A stretch of 64,000 nucleotides of DNA from Macrostomum lignano (GCA_002269645.1 NIVC01000714.1:186001-250000), one strand, 5' to 3'; numbered from the stretch's first letter, positions 5,969 to 46,194 are shown. The notes: generated from the sequence alone by a model not told the origin. Made by a program: numbers and translations.

Positions 5969-7012
5969 AATCTGTGGCCGCAAACCAAACGAATAATTAA
6001 TAATTTTGATATTCCCAGAGACTGGTAGGGCAGTGCTAAGGTGCAATTGCAGTAGAAGATATGGACACTCGTCTCAGTAGAAAAAGTGCATTTTCCAAGG
6101 ATTTATCACGATGCAATAGTCGCATAAGGGGTAAGAAACAGAAGCTATTCCCGTAGCAAACTACCGGAAAACAATGGCGAGAGGTGACACAGCCAAAGAT
6201 AGCCCAGTCATTGTTAATTCCCCGCTCCATCACCCTAGCCACTAACCCAGGCCACTCAGAACCCCAGACTCCGTTTTCCCTGGCAACAGGGGATGTCGCT
6301 CATATTTTTAGAGAAGAAGAGCCGCGGCCGGCAACTAATGCGACCGGTTGTGCCCAAGGAGACCATGGCATAAGAATCTGGAACAGCTACCCGACAAGAT
6401 GAGGCTATGAGGCCACGACCCACGGAGTCAGTGGAATGGACAGAATTGCCCCTAAGCGCTGGTTGTGGGACCATGTCGCTTAAGGCGTTGCGCCACGCTG
6501 CCAGTAATTATCATTATGCTGGAGTTGGCAGTCCACGCGGTTCTGGGTCTCCATGGCCTTCTAATCATCCATTACTGCCTCTGCCCCCTGCATGGCTTTC
6601 GGGGGGAAGCAAAACTGGGCTTCTGGGAGAGGGTCCTCAACAGAGTTGAAGGGGAAGTGGAAAAATGGGAGAATTGCCCCCACAACATCATGGCACACTC
6701 GCCGCGCGCGCAAAACAGAGGGTAGACTGCAGGCATCAGACTTGCTGCAACAATGCGCTCGCAATCGCCTATTCTGTATGCAGAAGAGGCAGCACGAAGA
6801 AGAGCTCTGAAGAGGAAGCATCCCCAACTCAACTCGCCAACTTTGAATAAAACAGAGCGATGGCAGTTCGTGACTGCTGGATCGATTCTTTTTGAGAGCG
6901 ACAGGGGTCTGCAACCTGGGCTTTCTCTGCTACAGCTTTCAATAGGCTGCGAGGCTGGGGCGAAGGGAGAAACAGTTGGAAACGTACTTTTACTTTTTAG
7001 TGTGCCTTATGA

Positions 7013-7520
<508 letters not shown>

Positions 7521-8419
7521 CACAGAACAGGATGCGAAGCCAGAACGAGCTATGAATTATTTATTGCATTGGCTATTCCGTACCTGTGGAAATGCACTGG
7601 CTCCAATAAATGATTAACACAGCATGGTAGGAGCATCTTAGGTGGAACGATTCCGCAAAATTTCTTAGTACTTCACCTATGAGAGTAAAAAGGCCCCGTG
7701 AATTGGAGATGAAGTTTTAGGATAGCCAGCCAGCCTTTGCTGATGAAGCTGAGAGGCTGGATTGAGGACAGCAGACTGAGACCTACGAGTAAATTGTAAT
7801 TCTGGGAACGAGTAATTCGCCTTTGTCTGATCTGCAGGCTGAAGTGCAGTTGCCGAAGGTCAGATTGCACCCGTGCTCGCGTGGGAATTGGGAGAGCTGA
7901 TGAAGAAGATTACTGTGGTTGTGGACTTGTACTATTACAAGTGTCTCATCCAACTGTTAAATGAGTCTCTATTGTTCATCCTTTGCTTTTTTAGCTATTT
8001 CTATGACAACCCGGAAGAGCTCCCGTCATCTCTTAATAATAGCTAATGCAATTTTTGTGTTGATTTACTGTGCGATTGTAATTGGTGGTTAAGATAAACA
8101 GACAAACACTTGCACACATTCTACTGAACATAGCTACTACTGAGCGACAATGTTGGGTGTACTTTTATTAACTCTACTCGCGTGCGACTCATGAAACTGT
8201 CACTCATGCTGGATTGGTAGAGAGTCACTCGGATCTCTTTTCTTTTGTTTCTTTGACTGAGCTGTCTTGAAAAGGACTTGGCCTGCTAGGCTAGGGTGCC
8301 ACCAAGATAAAACAGACGACAAGTCTGATAAGTTGGATACTCGTAGCTGTCTATTTTCAGTCTTAAGCAGACTTAAGGCATCAATAGCAGTTAAGTAAAG
8401 GTAGAATGCGATGGGTGAG

Positions 8420-9236
<817 letters not shown>

Positions 9237-11149
9237 CGATGGTAGGTTAGAATCACAGTGCAAGAGATTATAGAGCAAGTACACCGGCAGGAAGCGGAGA
9301 CCTGAAAAGGTAAAAAGCTTCAATTTTTTAACAGCTATGGTACAGGCATTCCTATCGTTGCAAAGAGCATTTCAACCCCAGCCCGCCTATAGAGAGAGAC
9401 CTGATAAACTGTTAAGAGATGTAGCGGGCACGCTACATTGGAAGAGTCATCCTGAGCAGAGAATCAAGATAGTGACGCACGCCCGGCTCCACGCCCAGCA
9501 AGGGGGACTTGCAGATGGCTGAGAAATGCATTCTTCATCACTGAAATACGCATTCGTTACGGTTGAGCCAGCAGCGGCCCTGCTTGCTGGGAGCAGTTGA
9601 TTTTCTGACGAGTGCGTGGAGAGATGGAGGCTGGCAGGAGGAGGGGGAGGGGGTTGATGGCGCCAGGAGTCTGTGAGACAATGGCAGCAGCCCGTACCAC
9701 TTAAATCCCTCACTTAACTAACAATTTCACACATGCAGCAGGCAATATCCGCATGCTTTAACAAGACTGTCTACAGCTGCATGGTTGTCATGACAACCGG
9801 GTGCTTGGGATAGAAAGCATAGCTGAGAGCGTCGAGTGGGGAAACAATTTTTAAAATATTTTTTGTTAAAATCTGCAGGCTCATCACATTAAGGATGGAC
9901 ATTATATCTAAAAAAATTTGCAGCCTTTAAAAAACACAAATCTTTAGTAAAATCAAACGGTATCAATTATTTTTTAAATTGAGCTGTGTTAAAATAAATT
10001 CAGCCGAAAGGTGGGGACTAAAAGGCGCTATGGGAAGTTGCAAAATAGAGCTTCAGGTCTCAAACTGAATAATAACAGATGTTGCTCAAAACCAATGAAC
10101 AGGAAACTGCTGATTTTCTCGACATGTATTACTGTAGTAGCCACGCATGCAAAGTAAAGTTTTAGCTATACCTATAATGCAACCTACCATACCTTATTGC
10201 AATTCAATCCGTCATATTTGTAATTGATTTCGGCATGTACTTTAGTGAAGCACGACAAAGCCATAGAAAATATATCAAGTCCTTTTCCTCAAAATATTTG
10301 CATTTAATTTGATCAGCAATCTCATGCTGGTACTCAGGATGGGACAGATTCCGCTTGACTGCAATTTAATTCAATTTTAATTCAATTCAATTCTCTCTCT
10401 ATATCGCTGAGGCACGAACTTGGTTCATGAATGGTGAGTAAGGTGAAGATACCGACACGAGTGTGAACATGCATGCCTCAGGAGCTCTGGCGCCGTCCAA
10501 CATCAGGTGAATGATTTTTCAACAAGCTCATCCAGCTCCGAAAGGAAGCCTTGGAAATCTGGGCTCTTAAATCTGGTACCACCAGTCCCCATCACCTCTC
10601 ACCGCTCACCTCTGTCCTGCGCAGTCCACAGGTTCACACCAAATTCTTCCATGAACGCAAGGTTCTGGTGAATTCCCTCATTCATGCTCCAGGTGGCGTG
10701 CTGAAACCTAGTATAGCCTTTCGTAGTCGTTTCGAAGTTCCACTCGTACACTGCATTCTGCATGCGTCAGGAAACTGGTCAGTCAGGAAATCGCGCATTT
10801 GGGACGTAGTCCCGTTGTGTGAACCGAGGAGAGCCAGTGCAACAGCGCCTTCTGCATGTTTTCTTGCGTCACCTTCAACCGGTTGCCTCTTTTTGTTAGC
10901 GTTTTAAATCTGCCCGTCTCTTGAAATGTCTTGATGGATGATGCTGTCGGTCGTTTAATTGACGCTTTATTACCAGCTGATTGGCCAACAACATTCAGTC
11001 CTCGGCGCGCTCAAATGCATTTATCCTCCTCTAGGTCCTGCCGTCTTGTAGCCTATGGTTAATTTATCTGGCCAAAAGTGGCAACGGCTCACGGTAGAAC
11101 TTTATTTTAAGCAAAAGGTAAAAGTCCAAGCAATAGCAGAAGGATGCGC

Positions 11150-20519: not shown

Positions 20520-20750
20520 TCCCAAGACAGCAAGCATCCCCCAGTAGCAAGCATCCCCTAATACTCCTAGCAAGCATCCACCCAGATAGCAAGCATCTGC
20601 AGATAGCAAGCATCTTGCAGATAGCAAGCATCTTGCAGATAGCAAGCATACCCTAAATAATGTAGAAGCATCCTTCCAGATAGCAAGCATCCTGCACATA
20701 GCAAGAATCCCTAAATAGCAAGCATCCCTGGATAGAAATAATCCTATACA
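20520..20750. repeat. Degenerate minisatellite of about 18-20 bp (AGATAGCAAGCATC...)
   Basis: TAGCAAGCATC recurs about 10 times. Confidence 0.85.
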
Positions 20751-20769
20751 TGTAGCCAAGCTTATCAAG

Positions 20770-22860
20770 CGCAGTAATCCTTGGCTATCGAGTGCAGTAA
20801 TCCTTGGTTTATTAATAGCAATAATCCATGGCTTATCGAGTGCAGTAATCCTTGGTTTATTAATAGCAATAATCCTTGGCTTATCGAGTGCAGTAATTCA
20901 TGGTTTATTAATAGCAATAATCCTTGGCTTATCGAGTGCAGTAATCCTTGGTTTATTAATAGCAATAATCCATGCCTTATCGAGTGCAGTAATCCTTGGT
21001 TTGCCAAGAGCAATAGTCCTTGGCTTATCGAGTGCAGTAATCCTTGATTTGCCAAGAGCAATAGTCCTTGGTTTATTGAGTGCAGTAATCCTTGGTTTAT
21101 TAATAGCAATAGTCCTTGGTTTATTGAGTGCAGTAATCCTTGGTTTATTAATAGCAATAATCCTTGGCTTATCGAGTGCAGTAATCCTTGGTTTGCCAAG
21201 TGCATAATCCTTGGTTTATCGAGTGCAGTAATCCTTGGTTTATTAATAGCAATAATCCTTGGCTTATCGAGTGCAGTAATCCTTGGTTTATTAATAGCAA
21301 TAATCCATGGCTTATCGAGTGCAGTAATCCTTGGTTTGCCAAGAGCAATAGTCCTTGGCTTATCGAGTGCAGTAATCCTTGGTTTGCCAAGAGCAATAGT
21401 CCTTGGTTTATTGAGTGCAGTAATCCTTGGTTTATTAATAGCAATAGTCCTTGGTTTATTGAGTGCAGTAATCCTTGGTTTATTAATAGCAATAATCCTT
21501 GGCTTATCGAGTGCAGTAATCCTTGGTTTGCCAAGTGCATAATCCTTGGTTTATCGAGTGCAGTAATCCTTGGTTTATTAATAGCAATAATCCTTGGCTT
21601 ATCGAGTGCAGTAATCCTTGGTTTATTAATAGCAATAATCCATGGCTTATCGAGTGCAGTAATCCTTGGTTTGCCAAGAGCAATAGTCCTTGGCTTATCG
21701 AGTGCAGTAATCCTTGGTTTGCCAAGAGCAATAGTCCTTGGTTTATTGAGTGCAGTAATCCTTGGTTTATTAATAGCAATAGTCCTTGGTTTATTGAGTG
21801 CAGTAATCCTTGGTTTATTAATAGCAATAATCCTTGGCTTATCGAGTGCAGTAATCCTTGGTTTGCCAAGTGCATAATCCTTGGTTTATTAATAGCAATA
21901 ATCCTTGGCTTATCGAGTGCAGTAATCCTTGGTTTATTAATAGCAATAATCCTTGGTTTATCGAGTGCATTAATCCTTGGTTTATTAATAGCAATAATCC
22001 TTGGCTTATCGAGTGCAGTAATCCTTGGTTTATTAATAGCAATAATCCTTGGCTTATCGAGTGCAGTAATCCTTGGTTTGCCAAGAGCAATAGTCCTTGG
22101 TTTTTTGAGTGCAGTAATCCTTGGTTTATTAATAGCAATAGTCCTTGGTTTATTGAGTGCAGTAATGCTTGGTTTATTAATAGCAATAATCCTTGGCTTA
22201 TCGATTGCAGTAATCCTTGGTTTGCCAAGTGCATAATCCTTGGTTTATTAATAGCAATAATCCTTGGTTTATCGAGTGCAGTAATCCTTGGTTTATTAAT
22301 AGCAATAATCCATGGCTTATCGAGTGCAGTAATCCTTGGTTTGCCAAGAGCAATAGTCCTTGGCTTATCGAGTGCAGTAATCCTTGGTTTGCCAAGAGCA
22401 ATAGTCCTTGGTTTATTGAGTGCAGTAATCCTTGGTTTATTAATAGCAATAGTCATTGGCTTATCGAGTGCAGTAATCCTTGGTTTATTAATAGCAATAA
22501 TCCTTGGTTTATCGAGTGCAGTAATCCTTGGTTTATTAATAGCAATAATCCTTGGCTTATCGAGTGCAGTAATCCTTGGTTTATTAATAGCAATAATCCA
22601 TGGCTTATGAGTGCAGTAATCCTTGGTTTATTAATAGCAATAATCCTTGGCTTATCGAGTGCAGTAATTCATGGTTTATTAATAGCAATAATCCTTGGCT
22701 TATCGAGTGCAGTAATCCTTGGTTTATTAATAGCAATAATCCATGGCTTATCGAGTGCAGTAATCCTTGGTTTGCCAAGAGCAATAATCCTTGGCTTATC
22801 GAGTGCAGTATTCCTTGGTTTGCCAAGAGCAATAATCCTTAGCTTATCGAGTGCAGTAAT
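20770..22860. repeat. 24-bp satellite with variant monomers and a 335-bp higher-order repeat
   Basis: Monomers AATCCTTGGTTTATTAATAGCAAT, AATCCTTGGCTTATCGAGTGCAGT, AATCCTTGGTTTGCCAAGAGCAAT. Identical spurious ORFs at 21169..21540 and 21504..21875 are offset by 335 bp. Confidence 0.97.
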
Positions 22861-22929
22861 CTAAGTGTTTTTATTTAGTCCTTTAATAAAAGCTTTTAAT
22901 AAAAAATTTTACACTACTACTTTTAAACT

Positions 22930-24983: not shown

Positions 24984-27900
24984 ATGCTGTCAATGCATCG
25001 TTTTGCCTCCCTGGCATCCAATGGCATGCGTTTATCCCGCTGCCAACAGTTCCGCCAGCTCTCGTCAGCTCCCGATGCACATGCTGAGCCACCATTCTTT
25101 GAAATGGTTGAGAAATTCTTCGACAAAGCTGCCACCCTGCTGGAGCCGAAGCTCATCGATGAGCTGCCTGGCAAACTGCCTATGGAGGAGAGGACCAAAA
25201 AGGTTCGTGTTTTTTATTCCTATATTTACTACTCTTATTGAGACTTGATCGATTTGGAAGATTTAATTTGCACACTGATTCGATTTTTTCTTCCATTAAT
25301 CGTGTTTGCAATTTTTTATTTTGGGCCTACTAAATGCTTTTTTGATACTGTAGGAATGAGGTGTAGATTCCAAAGATGGGATTCTACATACCAAAGTTGG
25401 CATTTTCTTCCTAAAGATGGGATTTTGATCCCTTAGCTAGAAGTCTGATTGCGAAGATGGGATTTTGATTACAAAGAAGGGATTTGGATCTCAAAGATGG
25501 GAATTGGTCACAAAGATGGGATTTAGGTCCCAAAGATGGGATTTGGATCCCAAAGATGGGATTTAGGTCCCAAAGATGGGATTTAGATCCCCAATATGGG
25601 ATTTGGATCCCAAAGGTAGGATTTTAATCCCAAAGATGGGATTTGGATCCCCAAGAGGGGATTTAGATCCTTAGAATCAGATTTTGGTCTAAAATGGGAT
25701 TTCTATATCAAATATAAAATTTCAAATATGAAAATTTGATATTGCAAACAAGGTTTCGGCTCTGCAAATAATATTTAAAAAATACACCTACAGATGAGGT
25801 TTCAACCCAAACCCCATTAACTTCAGGTGCGTGGCATCCTAAGCATCGTGAAGCCGTGCAACCACGTCCTCGAGGTCACCTTCCCTATTCGTCGGGACGA
25901 CGGTCGCTTTGAAATCATTCGCGGCTGGCGGGCGCAGCACTCGCTGCACCGAACTCCGTGCAAAGGCGGCATTCGCTACGCCCCGGATGTCAACAAGAAC
26001 GAAGTCATGGCCCTGTCGGCCCTCATGACCTACAAGTGCGCCGTGGTGGACGTGCCCTTCGGGGGCGCCAAGGCCGGCTTGGCTGTCAATCCCAAGGAGT
26101 ACTCGGAGAACGAGCTGGAGAAGATCACTCGGCGATTCACCGTTGAGCTGGCTAAGAAGGGCTTTATTGGGCCGGGCGTTGACGTGCCCGCGCCGGACAT
26201 GGGCACCGGCGAGCGGGAAATGAGCTGGATTGCCGACACCTACGCTAATACTCACGGTGCGGCCTTGTGGGATTCTGGATTGGGGATGTGGGATTCTGGA
26301 TTGAGGATGTGGGATTCTGGATTGGGGATGTGGGATTCTGGATTATGGATGTGGGATTCTAGATTTGAGATGTGGGATTCTGAGTTGGGGATGTGGGATT
26401 CTGGATTGGGGATGTGGGATTCTGGATTGGGGATGTGGGATTCTGGATTATGGATGTGGGATTCTAGATTTGAGATGTGGGATTCTGAGTTGGGGATGTG
26501 GGATTCTGGATTGGGGATGTGGGATTCTGGATTGGGGATGTGGGATTCTGGATTGGGGATGTGGGATTCTGGATTGGGGATGTGGGATTCTGGATTATGG
26601 ATGTGGGATTCTAGATTTGAGATGTGGGATTCTGAGTTGGGGATGTGGGATTCTGGATTGGGGATGTGGGATTCTGGATTGGGGATGTGGGATTCTGGAT
26701 TGGGGATGTGGGATTCTGGATTATGGATGTGGGATTCTAGATTTGAGATGTGGGATTCTGAGTTGGGGATGTGGGATTCTGGATTGGGGATGTGGGATTC
26801 TGGATTGGGGATGTGGGATTCTGGATTATGGATGTGGGATTCTAGATTTGAGATGTGGGATTCTGAGTTGGGGATGTGGGATTCTGGATTGGGGATGTGG
26901 ATTCTGGATTGGGGATGTGGGATTCTAGATTTGGGATGTGGGATTCTGGATTGGGGATGTGGGATTCTGGATTGGGGATGTGGGATTCTAGATTTGGGAT
27001 GTGGAATTCTGGATTGGAGATGTGGGATTCTGGATTGGGGATGTGGGATTCTGGATTGGGGATGTGGGATTCTGGATTAGGGATGTGGGATTCTAGATTT
27101 GGGATGTGGAATTCTGGATTAGAGATGTGGGATTCTGGATTGGGGATGTGGGATTCTGGATTGGGGATGTGGGATTCTGAGTTGGGGATGTGGGATTCTG
27201 GATTGGGGATGTGGGATTCTGGATTGGGGATGTGGGATTCTGGATTATGGATGTGGGATTCTAGATTTGAGATGTGGGATTCTGAGTTGGGGATGTGGGA
27301 TTCTGGATTATGGATGTGGGATTCTAGATTTGAGATGTGGGATTCTGAGTTGGGGATGTGGGATTCTGGATTGGGGATGTGGGATTCTGGATTGGGGATG
27401 TGGGATTCTGGATTATGGATGTGGGATTCTAGATTTGAGATGTGGGATTCTGAGTTGGGGATGTGGGATTCTGGATTGGGGATGTGGGATTCTGGATTGG
27501 GGATGTGGGATTCTGGATTGGGGATGTGGGATTCTGGATTATGGATGTGGGATTCTAGATTTGAGATGTGGGATTCTGAGTTGGGGATGTGGGATTCTGG
27601 ATTGGGGATGTGGGATTCTGGATTGGGGATGTGGGATTCTGGATTGGGGATGTGGGATTCTGGATTTTGGATGTGGGATTCTAGATTTGAGATGTGGGAT
27701 TCTGAGTTGGGGATGTGGGATTCTGGATTGGGGATGTGGGATTCTGGATTGGGGATGTGGGATTCTAGATTTGGGATGTGGGATTCTGGATTGGGGATGT
27801 GGGATTCTGGATTGGGGATGTGGGATTCTAGATTTGGGATGTGGAATTCTAGATTGGAGATGTGGGATTCTGGATTGGGGATGTGGGATTCTGGATTGGG

Positions 27901-30900
27901 GATGTGGGATTCTGGATTAGGGATGTGGGATTCTAGATTTGGGATGTGGAATTCTGGATTAGAGATGTGGGATTCTGGATTGGGGATGTGGGATTCTGGA
28001 TTGGGGATGTGGGATTCTGGATTATGGATGTGGGATTCTAGATTTGAGATGTGGGATTCTGAGTTGGGGATGTGGGATTCTGGATTGGGGATGTGGGATT
28101 CTGGATTGGGGATGTGGGATTCTGGATTATGGATGTGGGATTCTAGATTTGAGATGTGGGATTCTGAGTTGGGGATGTGGGATTCTGGATTGGGGATGTG
28201 GGATTCTGGATTGGGGATGTGGGATTCTGGATTGGGGATGTGGGATTCTGGATTATGGATGTGGGATTCTAGATTTGAGATGTGGGATTCTGAGTTGGGG
28301 ATGTGGGATTCTGGATTGGGGATGTGGGATTCTGGATTGGGGATGTGGGATTCTGGATTGGGGATGTGGGATTCTGGATTATGGATGTGGGATTCTAGAT
28401 TTGAGATGTGGGATTCTGAGTTGGGGATGTGGGATTCTGGATTGGGGATGTGGGATTCTGGATTGGGGATGTGGGATTCTAGATTTGGGATGTGGGATTC
28501 TGGATTGGGGATGTGGGATTCTGGATTGGGGATGTGGGATTCTAGATTTGGGATGTGGAATTCTGGATTGGAGATGTGGGATTCTGGATTGGGGATGTGG
28601 GATTCTGGATTGGGGATGTGGGATTCTGGATTAGGGATGTGGGATTCTAGATTTGGGATGTGGAATTCTGGATTAGAGATGTGGGATTCTGGATTGGGGA
28701 TGTGGGATTCTGGATTGGGGATGTGGGATTCTGGATTGGGGATGTGGGATTCTAGATTTGAGATGTGGGATTCTAAATTGGGGATGTGGGATTCTAGATT
28801 GGGGATGTGGGATTCTGGATTGGGGATGTGGGATTCTGGATTGGGGATGTGGGATTCTGGATTGGGGATGTGGGATTCTGGATTATGGATGTGGGATTCT
28901 AGATTTGAGATGTGGGATTCTGAGTTGGGGATGTGGGATTCTGGATTGGGGATGTGGGATTCTGGATTGGGGATGTGGAATTCTGGATTGGAGATGTGGG
29001 ATTCTGGATTGGGGATGTGGGATTCTGGATTGGAGATGTGGGATTCTGGATTGGGGATGTGGGATTCTGGATTGGAGATGTGGGATTCTGGATTGGGGAT
29101 GTGGGATTCTAGATTTGAGATGTGGGATTCTGGTTTAGGATGTGTGATTCTGGTTTAGAATGTGGGATTCTGGATTAGGTTAAGATGGAGTTCTAAATGT
29201 CTATATTTTTGTCTTTCGAGTCGCATTCTCCATCCTAAATGTATTCAAAATTCCGATCGATTCTGCAGGCTTCAAAGACCTGGACGCGTACGCCTGCGTC
29301 ACTGGCAAGCCGATCGCCATGGGCGGCATTCACGGCCGCACCTCGGCCACTGGCCGGGTGAGTTTTCCTAGAAAACACTGTTTATTCCTTATTTTACTGG
29401 AGTGTTTAACACCCTTTATTAACAATGATAGCAAACGTAGCAGTCCATGAATTATTCCCACACCCAAGGTGGATTATCCTACATTCCTTATTATCCCATG
29501 TAGCTAATAATCCCACACCTTTTCATAATTCCTTAATACCAAAACACGTGGCCATCGCCAAACTGAAACGGCATTTCCCTCACCAGGGCGTGTTTCACGG
29601 CATCGAGAACTTCATCAACGAGGCCAGCTACATGAGCCAGGTGGGCCTCACGCCCGGCTTTGGCGACAAAACCTTCATTATCCAGGGCTTCGGCAACGTG
29701 GGCCTGCACTCCATGCGCTACCTGCACAGGGCCGGCGCCAAGTGCGTGGGCGTCATCGAGTTCGACGGAGCCATCCACAATCCTGACGGCATTGACCCCA
29801 AGGAGCTGGAGAACTACAAGATTGTGAGGCTGACTGACTGACTGACAGACACATAAACACACAGACACAGACACATATACATAGACATAATCACAGACAC
29901 ATATACATAGACATAATCACAGACACATAGACATAGACATAATCACAGACACATAGACATAGTCACAGACACATGGACATAGTCACAGACACATGGACAT
30001 AGTCACAGACACATGGACATAGTCATAGACACATGGACATAGTCACAGACACATGGACATAGTCACAGACACATGGACATAGTCACAGACACATGGACAT
30101 AGTCACAGACACATGGACATAGTCACAGACACATGGACATAGTCACAGACACATGGACATAGTCACAGACACATGGACATAGTCACAGACACATGGACAT
30201 AGTCACAGACACATGGACATAGTCACAGACACATGGACATAGTCACAGACACATGGACATAGTCACAGACACATGGACATAGTCACAGACACATGGACAT
30301 AGTCACAGACACATGGACATAGTCACAGACACATGGACATAGTCACAGACACATGGACATAGTCACAGACACATGGACATAGTCACAGACACATGGACAT
30401 AGTCACAGACACATGGACATAGTCACAGACACATGGACATAGTCACAGACACATGGACATAGTCACAGACACAGACACAGAAACACACAGACTCACCCAG
30501 TCCCCCGCCGGCCCGCAGGAGCATGGCACCATCGTGGGTTTCCCTGGAGCCAAAGCCTACGAACCCAAGGACGACCTGATGTTCGAGAAGTGCGACATCC
30601 TGGTGCCGGCCGCGTCAGAGAAGGCCATCAATCTGGGCAACGCGCACCGCATCCAAGCTCGCATCATCGCGGAGGGCGCCAACGGGCCAACCACGGGAGC
30701 GGCCGAGCAGATCCTGCGCGACAACAGCGTGCTGGTGATTCCCGACCTCTACCTGAACGCTGGCGGTGTCACCGTGTCCTACTTCGAATGGCTGAAGAAT
30801 CTCAACCACGTTAGCTACGGCCGGTTGACCTTCAAATACGAGCGCGACTCGAACTACCAGCTGCTGGAGAGCGTGCAGCAGTCGCTAGAGCGCAAGTTCG

Positions 30901-31142
30901 GCCGTCACGGCGGCAAGATCCCCGTGACGCCCACTAGCGACTACGAGGCCAGGATGGCCGGCGCCAATGAAAAGGACATTGTGCACTCTGGCCTAGCGTT
31001 CACTATGGAGAGATCGGCTACTAACATGATGCGCATTGGTATGAAGTACAATCTGGGGCTGGACCTGCGCACCGCAGCTTTTATCGGAGCCATTGAGAAG
31101 ATTTATCAGGTGTACCGCACCTCCGGCTTGCTGTTTATCTAA
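24984..31142 (+). CDS. GLUD1: Mitochondrial glutamate dehydrogenase (5 exons, 532 aa)
   Basis: Exons 24984-25202, 25827-26256, 29269-29357, 29587-29823, 30519-31142. GT-AG, phases match, 1599 nt. Motifs [71 protein letters not shown], preceded by an Arg/Ser-rich transit peptide. Confidence 0.97.
25370..25680. repeat. Degenerate 20-bp minisatellite in GDH intron 1 (GATGGGATTTGGATCCCAAA)
   Basis: About 14 imperfect copies visible. Confidence 0.85.
26266..29175. repeat. 21-bp satellite (GATGTGGGATTCTGGATTGGG)n filling GDH intron 2
   Basis: About 2.9 kb. It produces the (MWDSGLG)n and (CGILDWG)n spurious ORFs. Confidence 0.99.
29865..30475. repeat. 20-bp minisatellite (AGACACATGGACATAGTCAC)n in GDH intron 4
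   Basis: Highly homogeneous array. Confidence 0.98.
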
Positions 31143-31389
31143 AACTTGGCTAAATTTCAGTGTTTTTATTCATCCAAATTGCCTTTAGGATGCGTGTCAT
31201 TTTCAATTTATTTATTAGGTCCCTTTTGATTTCAGTAAACTCTGTGTGTTTGCTTCCTCTGCTTCTGTTGCAGATTATAGTAGTTTGTTGAAGGTCAAAC
31301 TGTGCACACAGTTCTATCTTTAAACTTTTTAAATCCAGCCGTAGAAATTCTTTTAATAATTGTCATATAGAGTATTCTTAGAGTCGCAA

Positions 31390-32150
31390 ATAAACCATTC
31401 TTAGAATTGCCACTAAACCGTTTCTAGGAACCGCTTCTAAACCATTTCTAAAAATTTCCACTTAAACCATTTCTTAGAAACCCCACTAAATCGTTTCTAA
31501 GAATCGCCACTAAATCGTTTCTTAGAATCGCCACTCAACCATTTCTAAGAATCGCCACTGAATCGTTTCTTAGAATCGCCACTAAATCGTTTCTTAGAAT
31601 CGCCACCTAATCGTTTCTTAGAATCGCCACTTAATCGTTTCTTAGAATCGCCACTTAATCGTTTCTTAGAATCGTCACTTAATCGTTTCTTAGAATCGCC
31701 ACTTAATCGTTTCTTAGAATCGCCACTTAATCGTTTCTTAGAATCGCCACTTAATCGTTTCTTAGAATCGTCACTAAACCATTTCTAAGAATCACCACTA
31801 AATCGTTTCTTAGAATCGCCACTAAACATTTTTTAGAATCGCCACTAAATCGTTTCTTAGAATCGTCACCTAAACGTTTCTTAGAATCGCCACTAAAAAT
31901 TTTTTTAGAATCGCCACTAAATCGTTTCTTAGAATCGTCACTCATTCGTTTCTTAGAATCGTCACTCAATCGTTTCTTAGAATCGCCACCTAATCGTTTC
32001 GTAGAATCGCCACCCAATCGTTTCTTAGAATCGTCACTCAATCGTTTCTTAGAATCGTCACTCAATCGTTTCTTAGAATCGTCACTAAATCGTTTCTTAG
32101 AACCGCTTCTACACAATTCTAAAAATCGTCACTAAACCATTTCTAAGAAC
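31390..32150. repeat. 24-bp minisatellite (AATCGTTTCTTAGAATCGCCACT[A/T])n
   Basis: Directly visible downstream of the GDH stop. Confidence 0.96.
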
Positions 32151-32952
32151 TTTCACTGGTTTAAAACGTCAGAGAATTGTCTTCCAGTTCAGATTTTAAG
32201 CCACATAAACTGTTCACCATAGTTTCAGTACAATAGCATTGTATAATTATAGAATTAAAATAAATTAATAACTTGTAGTGATTGCCGATTAACCAACAGT
32301 TGTTTTCAAACCTAATTAAAGTTATGCTTTGTTTTATACACCTTTTGGAAGTTATTGCCTTAGTTTGCTACGTAATGCCGAGTCTGATTCTGATTTTTTT
32401 CAAATTAAGCTTATAAGTAGTTAGGCAGATGTCTTCTATTCGCTTATTTACCTTGGTTAATTATGCGTAAATGTTTTTACAAGTTTCTAGCATTGATTTT
32501 TATATTCTAGAAGCAAAATCACTCAATTTTTCTGTAATGGGTAAAATTGATATTAAAATAATGCATATTCTAAACACACAAGAATCTTTGTGACGCACTT
32601 AAACAATTGAAAACTGTTTAGAATATGTATTTATCATTTTATTTAATGCGCTTCTTTGCGATTGGAATTTATTCATATTGTAGCTTGCATCCAACAGCAA
32701 AGTGTGTGATGATTTTATTGTACTAGCGAGATCGGCCGCTCGTCTTTGTCCTTCTTCTGCTTTTCATTGGCTAAATTTATCATTATAGCTGAACGTCTTT
32801 TTTTCAAACAAAATCAAGAACTAACGATCTTATATTTCTGTTCTAATCATTGTGTCTTCTGCTTTTTTATCAGAAAAATTTGGCCAGAATTGCTTGAAAA
32901 GTGGGAAATGATATTCGATAATAAATCAAAAGCGTTGTCGTACAACTTTCAG

Positions 32953-33438
32953 CAGCAGGCGTCGAATCGTTCTCTGTTGCTATGGCGACGCCTCACTAGC
33001 GTTGCCGCGCCGCGCCTGCCATTCAGCGTGGATTCTAGGGCCGGGCAGCAGCCGCCGCCGCCTCGTCGCACCCGCGTCCTGTACGACGGCGGCTGCCCGC
33101 TGTGCAGCCGCGAGGTGGCGCTGGTGCGCAAAGCCAACGGCCTGCGTAGCGGCGAATTGACATTCGAATTCTGCGACATCACCAAGCCGGAGCAGTTCGA
33201 CCCGGTCTCCGCAGAGCACGGTATCTCGCGTGAGCAGGCCATGTCGCAGCTGCACGTCATCGGGCAGGACGGCCGGATCTACCGCGGCGTCGAGGCGTTT
33301 CGCAGGATGTACTCGGACGCCGGCTGGGACGGCCTGGTTGAGATGACGAAGATTCCCTCTGTTAACCGGCTTCTGACCAGCAGCTACGCTTGGTTTGCTA
33401 AGCACAGGACTAAACTGCAGAGTCTGGGCCAGGATTAG
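32953..33438 (+). CDS. DCC1-like thiol-disulfide oxidoreductase (DUF393); start codon uncertain
   Basis: VLYDGGCPLCSREV (DxxCxxC), MSQLHVI...G.IYRGVEAFRRMY, and Y.WFAKHR. The GC-rich coding block starts at a TTTCAG acceptor (32947-32952). An alternative in-frame genomic ATG lies at 32908. Confidence 0.88.
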   Translation, partial: QQASNRSLLLWRRLTSVAAPRLPFSVDSRAGQQPPPPRRTRVLYDGGCPLCSREVALVRKANGLRSGELTFEFCDITKPEQFDPVSAEHGISREQAMSQLHVIGQDGRIYRGVEAFRRMYSDAGWDGLVEMTKIPSVNRLLTSSYAWFAKHRTKLQSLGQD

Positions 33439-33949
33439 GCCTGATAATTCATATTGGGTGCAAATTATTTTATTTGGCCTGCATGTACACTGCTTGAACT
33501 TTGTGGTGCACATTTGCCTGGCTAGCCAAGGTACATCAATTAAAGTACATTAGTCTGGCTAGCCAATGTACATCAGTTAAAGTACATTAGTCTAGCTAGC
33601 CAGTGTACATCAATTAGTGTACATGCGCATTCGTGAGTATTTGATTTTCACAAATGGAACTGACGCTTTAATGTGCACCGACTGTTAGCGAGTAAAGCGT
33701 TGCTATTTTGTCTTCTTCAATTTTACCAATAGTTCTGAATGTCAAATATGATTTATTACTATGGTTTAGTGTGTCTTCAGTTTCTAGAGAGTAATTGCGT
33801 CCTTGCCCTCGTTGTTTTCGGTTTATACTTGGAGTAGTTGAGCAGTGAGTACAATGTTTAATTTTTTATATCAATATAAACCGAAATTACGAAAAATTTG
33901 AAACGTAGCAGATCGTCTGAACATTTTTGGTTGGATTTTATTTTTATAT

Positions 33950-34390
33950 ACTGTCGCTATGGTGTTGCTGTGCTGTTGCTATGGTGTTTCTATGATTTTG
34001 CTTTGGTGTTACTGTGCTGTTGCTATGGTGTCGCTGCGCTGTTGCTATGCTGTTACCATGGTTTAGCTGTGCTGTTAATATGGTGTCGCTATGTTGTTGC
34101 TATGGTGTTTCTATGCTGTTGCTAAGATGTTTCTATGCTGTTGCTATTCTGTTTCTATGCTTGCTGTTTCTATGGTGTCGCTATATTGTTGCTATGGTGT
34201 TTCTATGCTGTTGCTATGGTGTTGCTATGGTGTTGCTGTGCTGTTGCTATTCTGTTTCTATGCTGCTGCTATGGTGTCGCTATGTTGTTGCTATGGTGTT
34301 TCTGTGCTGTTGGTATTCTGTTTCTATGCTGTTGCTATGGTGTTTCTATGCTGTTGCTATGGTGTTTATGTGCCGTTGCTATGGTGATTT
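33950..34390. repeat. Minisatellite of 11/22 bp (TGTTGCTATGGTGTTTCTATGC)
   Basis: Explains the Cys/Leu-rich spurious ORFs between DCC1-like and NDUFB7. Confidence 0.93.
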
Positions 34391-34466
34391 CAACGCCGTT
34401 TCAATGCTCTGGTGTGGTCTTATAGAACTTTAAGGAGGTTCCCAACCTACTGTAATTGCAGCCACA

Positions 34467-34859
34467 ATGGGCCAGGCTCTGGTGCCGGACCGGCTGAAGC
34501 ACATGCACGACATGTACCTGAACCCGGATGCGGCCCCGGATTTAATCAAAGGCTCGCGCTTCGACCCGCTGCTGGGCTTCCCGAACGGTCGCAAGGAGCG
34601 GCCGATGCCGCCAATCACGGAGGACGAGATGATCATGGCCGGCCTGCCCGAGCAACAGCGCGACTACTGCGCCCACTGGTACCTGGCCTTCTTCAAATGC
34701 CGCTACCAGTACAAGGCGCGCTCCTTCTGGAAGTGCGCCGACGTGCTGCACGGCGTTGAACAGTGCCAGTACGACGATCGGGTGCTGCGGATGAAGGAGC
34801 ACGAGCGGGAGCGGCGCCTGATGCTGCGCCAGGCCAAGGGTCAGCTTGAACTGGAGTGA
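34467..34859 (+). CDS. NDUFB7: NADH dehydrogenase (ubiquinone) 1 beta subcomplex subunit 7 (B18), intronless, 130 aa
   Basis: MG start (myristoylation-type), FDPLLGFPNGRKERPM, RDYCAH, twin CX9C (CAHWYLAFFKC, CADVLHGVEQC), YDDRVLRMKEHERERRL. Confidence 0.95.
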   Translation: MGQALVPDRLKHMHDMYLNPDAAPDLIKGSRFDPLLGFPNGRKERPMPPITEDEMIMAGLPEQQRDYCAHWYLAFFKCRYQYKARSFWKCADVLHGVEQCQYDDRVLRMKEHERERRLMLRQAKGQLELE

Positions 34860-38691: not shown

Positions 38692-39143
38692 GTGCTTGGA
38701 CTCAACCGCAGGGACATCAGGGCGGTGACCATGGCCCTCTCGGGTCATGGCTGTTTTGCCATTCATCGTCACCTCCAAGAAAAAAAAGTGCGAGGAATTC
38801 TCATTCTGCCTCTCCGGTGTCGAGAATGCGGAGCACTTCATCTGTGAATGCCCCGCCGTTACTCAGGACAGGCTCAACTACCTCGGCCCAAACCCGGACC
38901 TCTCCGACGTTTTCAGGCCCGAGAATCTCTGCCAGCTCGTCCGCTACCTAAGGGCTACCGGGCGAACGATAATCCACCTCCTGGACTCTCCGGAGGGGGA
39001 CCGCGCTGCGGACACCGGCACCACCGGAACTCCCTGCGTGACACCGAAGCACCAGCTGCCTGTGGTCGCCAGGGGTTAGCGAAAGGGGCGGCAAGGCCTA
39101 CTCGCTGTTTCCGGACGCACGGAGCCCCCTGCAGCTAAGTCAA
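38692..39143 (+). mobile_element. 5'-truncated LINE 3' end (I/R1-like)
   Basis: Encodes [21 protein letters not shown] and [23 protein letters not shown], the TGH...CxxC...ETxxHxxCxCP C-terminal motif type of non-LTR elements, followed by the shared 3' tail. Confidence 0.85.
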
Positions 39144-39204
39144 TGTGCTCTGACCCTCTTACCTTGCTTAAATTTGGATGACTCACTTAGAGTACATTCA
39201 CATG

Positions 39205-40890
39205 AGCTTTCTTGGGAACTGGGGAAGAGTCACATAAAATTCCTTAGGAACTGGGTGAAGAGTCACATAAACTTCCTCAGGAACTGGGTGAAGAGTCACA
39301 TAAACTTCCTTAGGAACTGGGTGAAGAGTCGCATAAAATTCCTTAGGAACTGGGTGAAGAGTCACATAAACTTCCTTAGGAACTGGGTGAAGAGTCGCAT
39401 AAAATTCCTTAGGAACTGGGTGAAGAGTCGCATAAAATTCCTTAGGAACTGGGTGAAGAGTCACATAAACTTCCTCAGGAACTGGGTGAAGAGTCACATA
39501 AACTTCCTTAGGAACTGGGTGAAGAGTCACATAAACTTCCTTAGGAACTGGGTGAAGAGTCACATAAACTTCCTTAGGAACTGGGTGAAGAGTCACATAA
39601 ACTTCCTTAGGAACTGGGTGAAGAGTCGCATAAAATTCCTTAGGAACTGGGTGAAGAGTCACATAAACTTCCTTAGGAACTGGGTGAAGAGTCGCATAAA
39701 ATTCCTTAGGAACTGGGTGAAGAGTCGCATAAAATTCCTTAGGAACTGGGTGAAGAGTCACATAAACTTCCTCAGGAACTGGGTGAAGAGTCACATAAAC
39801 TTCCTTAGGAACTGGGTGAAGAGTCACATAAACTTCCTTAGGAACTGGGTGAAGAGTCACATAAACTTCCCTAGGAACTGGGTGAAGAGTCACATAAACT
39901 TCCTCAGGAACTGGGTGAAGAGTCACATAAAATTCCTTAGGAACTGGGTGAAGAGTCACATAAAATTCCTTAGGAACTGGGTGAAGAGTCACATAAACTT
40001 CCTTAGGAACTGGGTGAAGAGTCGCATAAAATTCCTTAGGAACTGGGTGAAGAGTCACATAAACTTCCTTAGGAACTGGGTGAAGAGTCGCATAAACTTC
40101 CTTAGGAACTGGGTGAAGAGTCGCATAAAATTCCTTAGGAACTGGGTGAAGAGTCACATAAACTTCCTCAGGAACTGGGTGAAGAGTCACATAAACTTCC
40201 TTAGGAACTGGGTGAAGAGTCACATAAACTTCCTTAGGAACTGGGTGAAGAGTCACATAAACTTCCCTAGGAACTGGGTGAAGAGTCACATAAACTTCCT
40301 CAGGAACTGGGTGAAGAGTCACATAAAATTCCTTAGGAACTGGGTGAAGAGTCACATAAAATTCCTTAGGAACTGGGTGAAGAGTCACATAAACTTCCCT
40401 AGGAACTGGGTGAAGAGTCACATAAAATTCCTTAGGAACTGGGTGAAGAGTCACATAAACTTCCCTAGGAACTGGGTGAAGAGTCACATAAACTTCCCTA
40501 GGAACTGGGTGAAGAGTCACATAAACTTCCTCAGGAACTGGGTGAAGAGTCACATAAAATTCCTTAGGAACTGGGTGAAGAGTCACATAAAATTCCTTAG
40601 GAACTGGGTGAAGAGTCACATAAACTTCCCTAGGAACTGGGTGAAGAGTCACATAAACTTCCCTAGGAACTGGGTGAAGAGTCACATAAAATTTCTCAGG
40701 AACTGGGTGAAGAGTCACATAAAATTCCTCAGGAACTGGGTGAAGAGTCACATAAAATTCCTCAGGAACTGGGTGAAGAGTCGCATAAAATTCATTAGGA
40801 ATTGGGTGAAGTGAAGAGTCACATAAACTTCCCTAGGAACTGTGGATGAGTCACATAAACTCCCTTAGGAACTGGGGAGCTAGGAGTCAC
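39205..40890. repeat. 33-bp satellite (GTGAAGAGTCACATAAACTTCCTTAGGAACTGG)n, about 50 copies
   Basis: Explains the 546-aa and 517-aa ORFs with an 11-aa period. Confidence 0.99.
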
Positions 40891-44692: not shown

Positions 44693-45768
44693 CTGGCGCC
44701 CCTTGGTGCTGGCGCCCCTTGGTGTTGGGCGCCCCTTGGTGCTGGCGCCCCTTGGTGCTGGCGCCCCTTGGTGCTGGCCCCCCTTGGTGCTGGCGCCCCT
44801 TGGTGCTGGCGCCCCTTGGTGCTGGCGCCCCTTGGTGCTGGCGCCGCTTGGTGCTGGCGCCCCTTGGTGCTGGCGCCCCTTGGTGCTGGCGCCCCTTGAT
44901 GCTGGTGCCCCTTGGTGTTGGGCGTCCCTTGGTGCTGGCGCCCCTTGGTGCTGGCGCCCCTTGGTGCTGGCGCCCCTTGGTGCTGGCTCCCCTTGGTGCT
45001 GGCGCCCCTTGGTGCTGGTGCCCCTTGGTGCTGGCGCCCCTTGGTGCTGGCGCCCCTTGGTGCTGGTGCCCCTTGGTGCTGGCGCCCCTTGGTGCTGGCG
45101 CCCCTTGGTGCTGGTGCCCCTTGGTGCTGGCTCCCCTTGGTGCTGGCGCCCCTTGGTGCTGGTGCCCCTTGGTGCTGGCGTCCCTTGGTGCTGGCGCCCC
45201 TTGGTGCTGGCGCCCCTTGGTGCTGGCGCCCCTTGGTGCTGGCGCCCCTTAGTGCTGGCGCCCCTTGGTGCTGGCGCCTCTTGGTGCTGGCTCCCCTTGG
45301 TGCTGGCTCCCCTTGGTTCTGGCGCCCCTTGGTTCTGGCGCCCCTTGGTTCTGGCGCCCCTTGGTGCTGGCTCCCCTTGGTGCTGGCGCCCCTTGGTGCT
45401 GGCTCCCCTTGGTGCTGGCGCCCCTTGGTGCTGGCTCCCCTTGGTGCTGGCGCCCCTTGGTGCTGGTGCCCCTTGGTGCTGGCGTCCCTTGGTGCTGGCG
45501 CCCCTTGGTGCTGGCGCCCCTTGGTGCTGGCGCCCCTTGGTGCTGGCGCCCCTTAGTGCTGGCGCCCCTTGGTGCTGGCGCCTCTTGGTGCTGGCTCCCC
45601 TTGGTGCTGGCTCCCCTTGGTTCTGGCGCCCCTTGGTTCTGGCGCCCCTTGGTTCTGGCGCCCCTTGGTGCTGGCTCCCCTTGGTGCTGGCGCCCCTTGG
45701 TGCTGGCTCCCCTTGGTGCTGGCGCCCCTTGGTTCTGGCGCCCCTTGGTGCTGGCGCCGCTTGGTGCT
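44693..45768. repeat. 16-bp satellite (CCCCTTGGTGCTGGCG)n
   Basis: Explains the LVLAPLGAGAPWCWRP ORFs. Confidence 0.98.
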
Positions 45769-46194
45769 AAGCCAGACAGGATTTGCTCACATCCAGCCAG
45801 CGCATTGAAGCAGCAAAGAAATCTCCCTTTCAATCAAGACAAGCATTTTTCAGACAGCCATTAGCTGCTTGCAATATCTGTCTGGGAACTTGATTTAAAA
45901 TGGGTTCAGCCTTGACTTGGCTGCAAGAGCGCAAAGTGCTTGTGCATCTGGGCTGATCCAATTCCCCGATGAGGCCCCACACCGTGAGGGGTTAACGAGC
46001 GAGCGAGTGTAGAAATTGCATACCCAAATTCTGTAGCTGGCTGGTGAGCCCATGTCCCAGAGGGTGACTGGAAATTGATGAGGAGATGAGGACATTGAGC
46101 AAGATCACTTTACTCAACTCCCCCCTGACTCTCAGACATTCATGAGTAGAAACACAATACGAGAAGCAGTCACTTTCACTGACTTGAAATTTCA

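Follow-up and report, generated by a model that had tools for sequence, protein, structure and literature searches.

A DCC1-like gene of Macrostomum lignano that most likely takes its AUG from the end of the spliced leader

The locus and its three copies

The window analysed here is a stretch of 64,000 nucleotides, read on one strand, from scaffold NIVC01000714.1 (186001-250000) of the Macrostomum lignano assembly Mlig_3_7, to which the NIVC01 sequences belong (PMC5730564). We found that its given strand carries a gene for glutamate dehydrogenase (GDH), a gene for a DCC1-like thiol-disulfide oxidoreductase and a gene for the complex I subunit NDUFB7, with the following features (positions are counted from the first letter of the window):

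24984-31142 (+): GDH, gene 1 (CDS range, introns included); 532 aa, PAA77951.1, Mlig013285g1; own ATG and presequence-like N terminus
31110-32952 (+): region that would be removed from the DCC1 mRNA as outron and intercistronic spacer when the spliced leader (SL) is added; also the 1843-nt intron of a fusion (GTGTAC...TTTCAG)
31375-32149 (no strand): 24-nt minisatellite in 32 copies, which inflates the GDH-DCC1 spacer
32953-33438 (+): single DCC1-like coding exon; 161 codons and TAG, lacking a 5' ATG
32953-33075 (+): N-terminal extension, 41 codons before the domain; Arg/Ser/Leu-rich and presequence-like by crude composition features
33076-33420 (+): predicted DCC1-like thiol-disulfide oxidoreductase domain (PF04134), Pfam profile positions 1-111 of 113
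33094-33105 (+): CPLC redox motif within YDGGCPLC (33082-33105); both cysteines, the proline and YDG are invariant among aligned homologues
33539-33544 (+): ATTAAA, the sole poly(A)-signal-like hexamer in a scan of 33439-33900, as a motif match
34456-34859 (+): NDUFB7, with a putative TTGCAG acceptor (34456-34461) 5 nt before its ATG at 34467

An exact look-up of the NDUFB7 protein placed it at three loci in GCA_002269645.1, namely NIVC01000714.1, which agrees with the window over 6393 nt without a mismatch, and NIVC01000529.1 and NIVC01002256.1. The latter two are close paralogous copies of the locus, as expected in a partly duplicated genome, and the copies are about 98% identical, non-coding DNA included. 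The 486-nt DCC1-like coding sequence is intact in all three, with one synonymous change in the domain, and in a three-way alignment substitutions amounted to about 2% in the spacer and the segment upstream of the acceptor, versus about 1.2% in the coding sequence. At the protein level the three paralogs differ solely by R/G at codon 29 and P/L at codon 37 (33034-33063), both within the N-terminal extension.

The match to PF04134 has an E value of 3.8e-22 and scores 80.1 bits against a cut-off of 27.8. By profile and motif, the protein is a member of the DCC1-like thiol-disulfide oxidoreductase family, with the corresponding activity predicted. Like the DCC family at large (PF04134; bacterial YuxK; marine-invertebrate proteins resembling Arabidopsis At5g50100), it matches the profile over its full length, carries YDGxCPLC and has an organelle-type extension as eukaryotic members do; unlike the family, it shares at most 46% identity with the searched representatives and has no genome-encoded initiator methionine. 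Its C terminus reads ...KLQSLGQD (33400-33438), without the LTGR..C..G.C tail that is retained in the aligned homologues from animals, algae and metagenomes.

An exhaustive homologue search returned 1593 relatives, none of them above 46% identity; a first search had given two distant matches only, with M. lignano's own proteins not among them. No close orthologue from another flatworm was found in the homologue search for a comparison of 5' ends. The best relatives, from hemichordates (Ptychodera and Glandiceps), a nemertean (Tubulanus), a brachiopod (Lingula), a scallop (Pecten; 'At5g50100, chloroplastic-like') and Volvox, begin with their own methionine, followed by 40-66 residues before VLYDGxCPLC. 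Given extensions of this length, initiation must lie approximately 40-60 residues upstream of the domain. An origin by horizontal transfer or contamination was rejected on two grounds: the proteins closest to it come from marine invertebrates and green algae and have presequences, and flatworm sequence surrounds the gene at three paralogous loci. On these sequence comparisons, the gene is best read as an inherited eukaryotic member of the DCC family, with no recent bacterial transfer.

Elsewhere in the window, a very long G-rich tandem array at 26000-29160 lies inside the range of the GDH gene, where it is presumably intronic; it reads GMWDSGL... and yields spurious ORFs of up to 760 aa. Other long low-complexity arrays occupy 7000-9300, 20700-22900, 39100-40800 and 44700-45900. 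An ORF at 140-868 on the minus strand is, by eye, what we take to be a retroelement aspartic-protease fragment.

Tandem acceptors in front of a reading frame without an ATG

The SL of M. lignano is CGGTCTCTTACTGCGAAGACTCAATTTATTGCATG, 35 nt long and ending in ...TTGCATG; approximately 30% of the species' genes are trans-spliced, and their acceptors are enriched for the motif [T/C]TNCAG (PMC8629364). The final ATG of the Macrostomum SL is a likely translation start codon and was for this reason left untrimmed in the genome paper (PMC10468722). With AUG as its last three bases, the leader has the end on which an SL-AUG-initiated flatworm mRNA depends, and the published sequence bears out the premise of the original prediction that this is a flatworm whose SL ends in AUG. 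We found no SL RNA gene in the window at up to 3 mismatches, nor any Rfam family in the window. The acceptors and ATGs of the DCC1-like gene are arranged as follows:

32908-32910 (+): genomic in-frame ATG, 45 nt 5' of the acceptor in DNA of GC 0.31; reads MIFDNKSKALSYNFQ...; would be lost with the outron upon SL addition
32947-32952 (+): acceptor 1, TTTCAG, which fits [T/C]TNCAG; annotated 5' end of PAA59503.1 (QQASN...) and acceptor of the fusion isoform
32953-32955 (+): acceptor 2, a tandem CAG of the NAGNAG type; the window's deposited CDS begins at 32956 (QASN..., 160 aa)
32956-32958 (+): candidate acceptor 3, CAG, from the sequence; no annotation at 32958/32959
32982-32999 (+): out-of-frame ATG opening MATPH and a stop (5 codons, frame +2); second AUG of the trans-spliced mRNA
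33241-33243 (+): next in-frame ATG, 3' of CPLC; would give a 65-aa fragment

Across the junction the sequence reads ...AACTTTCAG/CAG/CAG/GCG TCG..., with GCG at 32959-32961 after the two CAGs. The three tandem acceptors had been predicted to lie in phase 0, and all junctions are indeed in phase with the ORF that ends in TAG at 33436-33438. The AT-rich to GC-rich switch claimed at TTTCAG is also present: GC is 0.31 in 32908-32952 versus 0.69 in 32953-33075, and further out it is 0.34 in 32700-32907 and 0.62 in 33076-33435. By itself the acceptor motif is weak evidence: the window's given strand carries 2.5 copies of YTNCAG per kb (with CAG next in only 7 of 161 instances). What raises the acceptor here above chance is its position, precisely on the composition step and at the points where the coding sequence is annotated to begin in two paralogs. 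As in NAGNAG tandem acceptors, AGs 3 nt apart add or remove one codon and keep the frame; unlike the cis-spliced case, the splicing would here be in trans (at two sites, going by the annotation), and the residues affected would be 2 and 3, beside the initiator.

Both separately annotated models of the gene begin at these acceptors. In the window, the deposited CDS runs from 32956 to 33438 (160 aa), with CAG as its first codon and no ATG. In NIVC01002256.1, it starts directly after TTTCAG, at the equivalent of 32953 (161 aa, QQASN..., PAA59503.1); GenBank names this protein 'BOX15_Mlig028097g2, partial', with Mlig028097g1 as the name of the upstream GDH gene. Among the annotated CDSs nearby, only that of the DCC1-like gene lacks an initial ATG; the other three (GDH, NDUFB7 and innexin) all start with one. 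The gene identifiers were not found in a literature search or in the supplements of PMC5816591.

The annotation pipeline of M. lignano, TBONE, cuts transcriptional units only at SL-read peaks and poly(A)-site signals and is followed by TransDecoder, and the suffixes.g1 and.g2 denote genes inside one transcriptional unit (PMC5730564). A 5'-partial ORF right after an AG, found in two paralogs at adjacent acceptors, would be the expected output of this pipeline if SL reads lie there. Because TBONE cuts at SL-read peaks and the 5' ends of the CDSs fall at acceptors 1 and 2, we infer from the annotation that these two are experimentally supported SL sites. The original prediction had proposed all three acceptors as SL sites; the first two coincide with annotated 5' ends, whereas the third has no such support. 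If transcripts contained 32908-32952, TransDecoder would have picked the ATG at 32908, and the annotated starts lie downstream of it.

We then considered the mRNAs formed in silico by joining the SL to each acceptor. The SL AUG (mRNA nt 33-35) is the first AUG in each and is in frame, and the ORF that it opens comprises 162, 161 or 160 aa for acceptors 1, 2 and 3, with no intervening stop. It is the only AUG in these joined mRNAs that opens the ORF with the CPLC site, and they contain no genome-encoded in-frame AUG 5' of the essential part of the protein. Under the scanning model, a functional protein can come from the trans-spliced mRNA only via the SL AUG. The remaining ATGs behave as had been predicted: the alternative at 32908 is in frame within the AT-rich stretch, the ATG at 32982 is out of frame and stops after 5 codons (MATPH), and the next in-frame ATG, at 33241, lies beyond the DxxCxxC site, whose CPLC is at 33094-33105. 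The central claim, that the SL lends the start codon, is supported by the frame and by the ATG-less annotated 5' ends at the acceptors. The context of the SL AUG is poor, with U at -3 and C at +4. Initiation there is probably leaky and moderate, given this context and the out-of-frame SL AUG that would arise at NDUFB7 if the SL is added there (see below). In exact look-ups, the possible products MQQASN..., MQASN..., MIFDNK... (from ATG 32908) and MSQLHV... (from ATG 33241) had no matches on record.

In the first 40 residues of the SL-AUG product there are 7 arginines and 1 acidic residue, the first acidic residue falling at position 26-28, and the maximal hydrophobic moment of this N terminus is 0.43 versus 0.28 for NDUFB7, all by crude measures. 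These features point to likely mitochondrial targeting of the predicted DCC1-like protein. The distance to the domain is 41-43 residues from the SL AUG and 57 residues from the ATG at 32908; both fit the range of the homologues, and on such lengths homology cannot tell the two starts apart.

The segment upstream of the acceptor reads as non-coding, because its GC equals that of the spacer, its substitution rate is spacer-like and its frame is broken in both paralogs. None of the three paralogs has lost the ATG at 32908, but this carries little weight because the copies are so similar even in non-coding DNA. In the window copy, 80 open codons lie 5' of the acceptor in the frame of the ORF (32713-32952; Markov P ~0.003, empirical rate 5%). 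As a hint of coding we rejected this long open frame, since in both paralogs a stop codon and indels break it, and attribute it to chance.

The GDH unit and a deposited fusion

The GDH and DCC1-like genes are adjacent on the same strand and are annotated as one unit in NIVC01002256.1 (Mlig028097g1/g2), and the layout of the window is the same. The DCC1-like gene is gene 2 of a GDH-headed transcriptional unit. From the GDH stop to the acceptor, the repeat-adjusted distance is 1810 - 775 = 1035 nt with the 3' UTR included, at the edge of the criterion of <1 kb for M. lignano operons (Ustyantsev & Berezikov 2021); from the DCC1 stop to the NDUFB7 acceptor, it is 1023 - 552 = 471 nt. Further spacer minisatellites have periods of 37 nt (33510-33624) and 11 nt (33947-34383). 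The arrangement resembles the operons of M. lignano (Wudarski et al. 2017, PMC5730564; Ustyantsev & Berezikov 2021, PMC8629364) in its same-strand neighbours, in the SL-type acceptor of the downstream gene and in the g1/g2 naming. That operon spacers of this species are inflated by repeats is a published remark, and the minisatellites, which take up much of the spacers between GDH, DCC1 and NDUFB7, agree with it.

NDUFB7 may be the third gene of the GDH unit, and GDH, the DCC1-like gene and NDUFB7, all on one strand, may form a unit of mitochondrial functions. When the SL was joined in silico at the TTGCAG of NDUFB7, its AUG was out of frame and opened a 12-codon upstream ORF (MPQWARLWCRTG and a stop) that overlaps the real start (34456-34500). 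Translation of NDUFB7 would therefore need a bypass by leaky scanning, if the SL is added at this putative acceptor.

The copy in NIVC01000529.1 is annotated only as a fusion. Its protein, PAA81445.1, is an in-frame GDH::DCC1 of 683 aa that consists of GDH residues 1-522 and the DCC1 exon joined at acceptor 1 (...GAIEKIYQ/QQASNRSLLL...). The donor of the fusion, CAG/GTGTAC, precedes the GDH stop by 10 codons, and the window has the identical sequence (31109/31110). The cis-spliced fusion is a possible second source of a start codon for DCC1. The original prediction had counted splicing in cis to an upstream ATG-containing exon against an SL start; in part this applies, as the deposited model PAA81445.1 has such a splice in one paralog, and it adds a route while the SL route is kept.

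The source of the start codon

We propose that the GDH-headed unit is transcribed as a polycistronic RNA with the DCC1-like gene in second place. The 35-nt SL would be added at the tandem CAG acceptors 32952/32953 and 32955/32956, and possibly at 32958/32959, and its addition would discard the AT-rich outron along with the genomic ATG at 32908. With acceptors 3 nt apart and in phase 0, the SL-terminal AUG would always be in frame and would serve as the initiator at which ribosomes start. The product would be M-(Q)(Q)-ASNRSLLLWRRL..., 160-162 aa in length, with a mitochondrial-presequence-like extension (about 40 residues) leading into a complete DCC-family domain that includes CPLC. By a route that we take to be the minority one, cis use of the acceptor with the weak donor 10 codons before the GDH stop would yield the in-frame GDH::DCC1. 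We put the probability that the DCC1-like protein is initiated at the SL AUG, as gene 2 of the GDH unit and with the cis fusion as a minority route, at roughly three in four. Most likely, the DCC1-like gene lacks a usable start codon of its own, and its AUG comes from the end of the SL.

The fusion could in principle be the main product, with 32952 serving as a cis acceptor and the GDH ATG and presequence serving DCC1. This is consistent with the deposited 683-aa protein PAA81445.1 and its in-frame junction (...AIEKIYQ/QQASNRS...), with the unchanged CAG/GTGTAC donor in the window and with the extensive sharing of acceptors between cis- and trans-splicing reported for parasitic flatworms (PMC12582326). 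We nevertheless consider it quite unlikely and the SL route not displaced, because two of the three paralogs, the window's included, are annotated as a separate GDH (532 aa, own stop) and DCC1, because the donor GTGTAC is off the species consensus GT[G/A]AG (PMC8629364) and because DCC1 keeps a presequence-like extension of its own, of a length like that of its homologues. An in-frame junction also has a 1 in 3 chance of arising at random, and the pipeline reports a fused CDS only when it is in frame. A different and doubtful idea is that the gene lost its own initiator and that its expression rests on a regulated choice between SL trans-splicing, giving a stand-alone protein in M-Q(0-2) variants with a presequence of its own, and cis fusion to GDH codon 522, with the AUG and presequence of GDH. 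If true, this choice would set how much of the redox enzyme reaches the mitochondrion free and how much tethered to GDH, within a three-gene mitochondrial unit.

Initiation at the genomic ATG at 32908, on transcripts made without trans-splicing, would give MIFDNKSKALSYNFQQQASN... (176 aa). We regard this as very unlikely: the ATG is in frame, is present in all three paralogs and stands 57 residues from the domain, within the range of the homologues, but the segment has a non-coding-like composition (GC 0.31), and in two paralogs the annotated 5' ends lie 3' of this ATG, which TransDecoder would have taken if it had been part of the transcript. Its product is not on record by exact look-up, nothing like a start site of DCC1's own was noticed further 5', and the position of DCC1 as g2 of the GDH unit also argues against it. 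Least probable of all, and only remotely so, is that the SL AUG is skipped, with initiation at a near-cognate CTG/TTG (exon codons 8-9) or at the ATG at 33241, or that the gene is decaying and carried along untranslated in the GDH unit. The weak context of the SL AUG is compatible with skipping, which would also be needed at NDUFB7 were its putative acceptor to receive the SL, and the absence of the homologues' C-terminal LTGR..C..G.C tail would fit decay. However, a start at 33241 would leave a 65-aa fragment without CPLC, and a decaying gene is hard to square with an ORF intact in all three paralogs, a domain that differs by a synonymous change only and a full-length Pfam match.

Initiation at the SL AUG has precedents. 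In Schistosoma mansoni, 28% of trans-spliced transcripts have the SL AUG in frame, and more than 40 cDNAs depend on it, according to the account of Cheng et al. 2006 given in PMC9851317, which calls such reading frames 'slORFs' (the primary report being Cheng, Cohen, Ndegwa & Davis 2006, J Biol Chem 281:733); see also PMC12582326 and PMC5832876. As far as that account describes the mRNAs of Cheng et al. 2006, the DCC1-like mRNA would resemble them in that the SL ends in AUG, the acceptor abuts an AUG-less ORF and the SL AUG is first and in frame. Relative to the same account, it differs in coming from a free-living macrostomid and not from Schistosoma; in its tandem in-phase CAGs, which would give variants in the number of N-terminal glutamines; and in an acceptor for which a cis-spliced fusion to the upstream gene is annotated as well. 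An SL-supplied start codon has been known in flatworms since 2006, and the DCC1-like gene would be a clean new example and not a new phenomenon. What is new here is its membership, as gene 2, in a GDH-headed unit, together with a cis-spliced in-frame fusion as a possible second source of the start codon.

These findings suggest that a GenBank protein of M. lignano labelled 'partial' probably needs only the SL AUG to be complete, and that the same reading should be considered for other ATG-less CDSs starting at acceptors in this species, a model widely used in regeneration research. With a single exon, three acceptors in phase and a cis-splice that competes for them, the DCC1-like gene is also a compact test case in which the efficiency of the SL AUG can be measured, in a species for which transgenesis is available.
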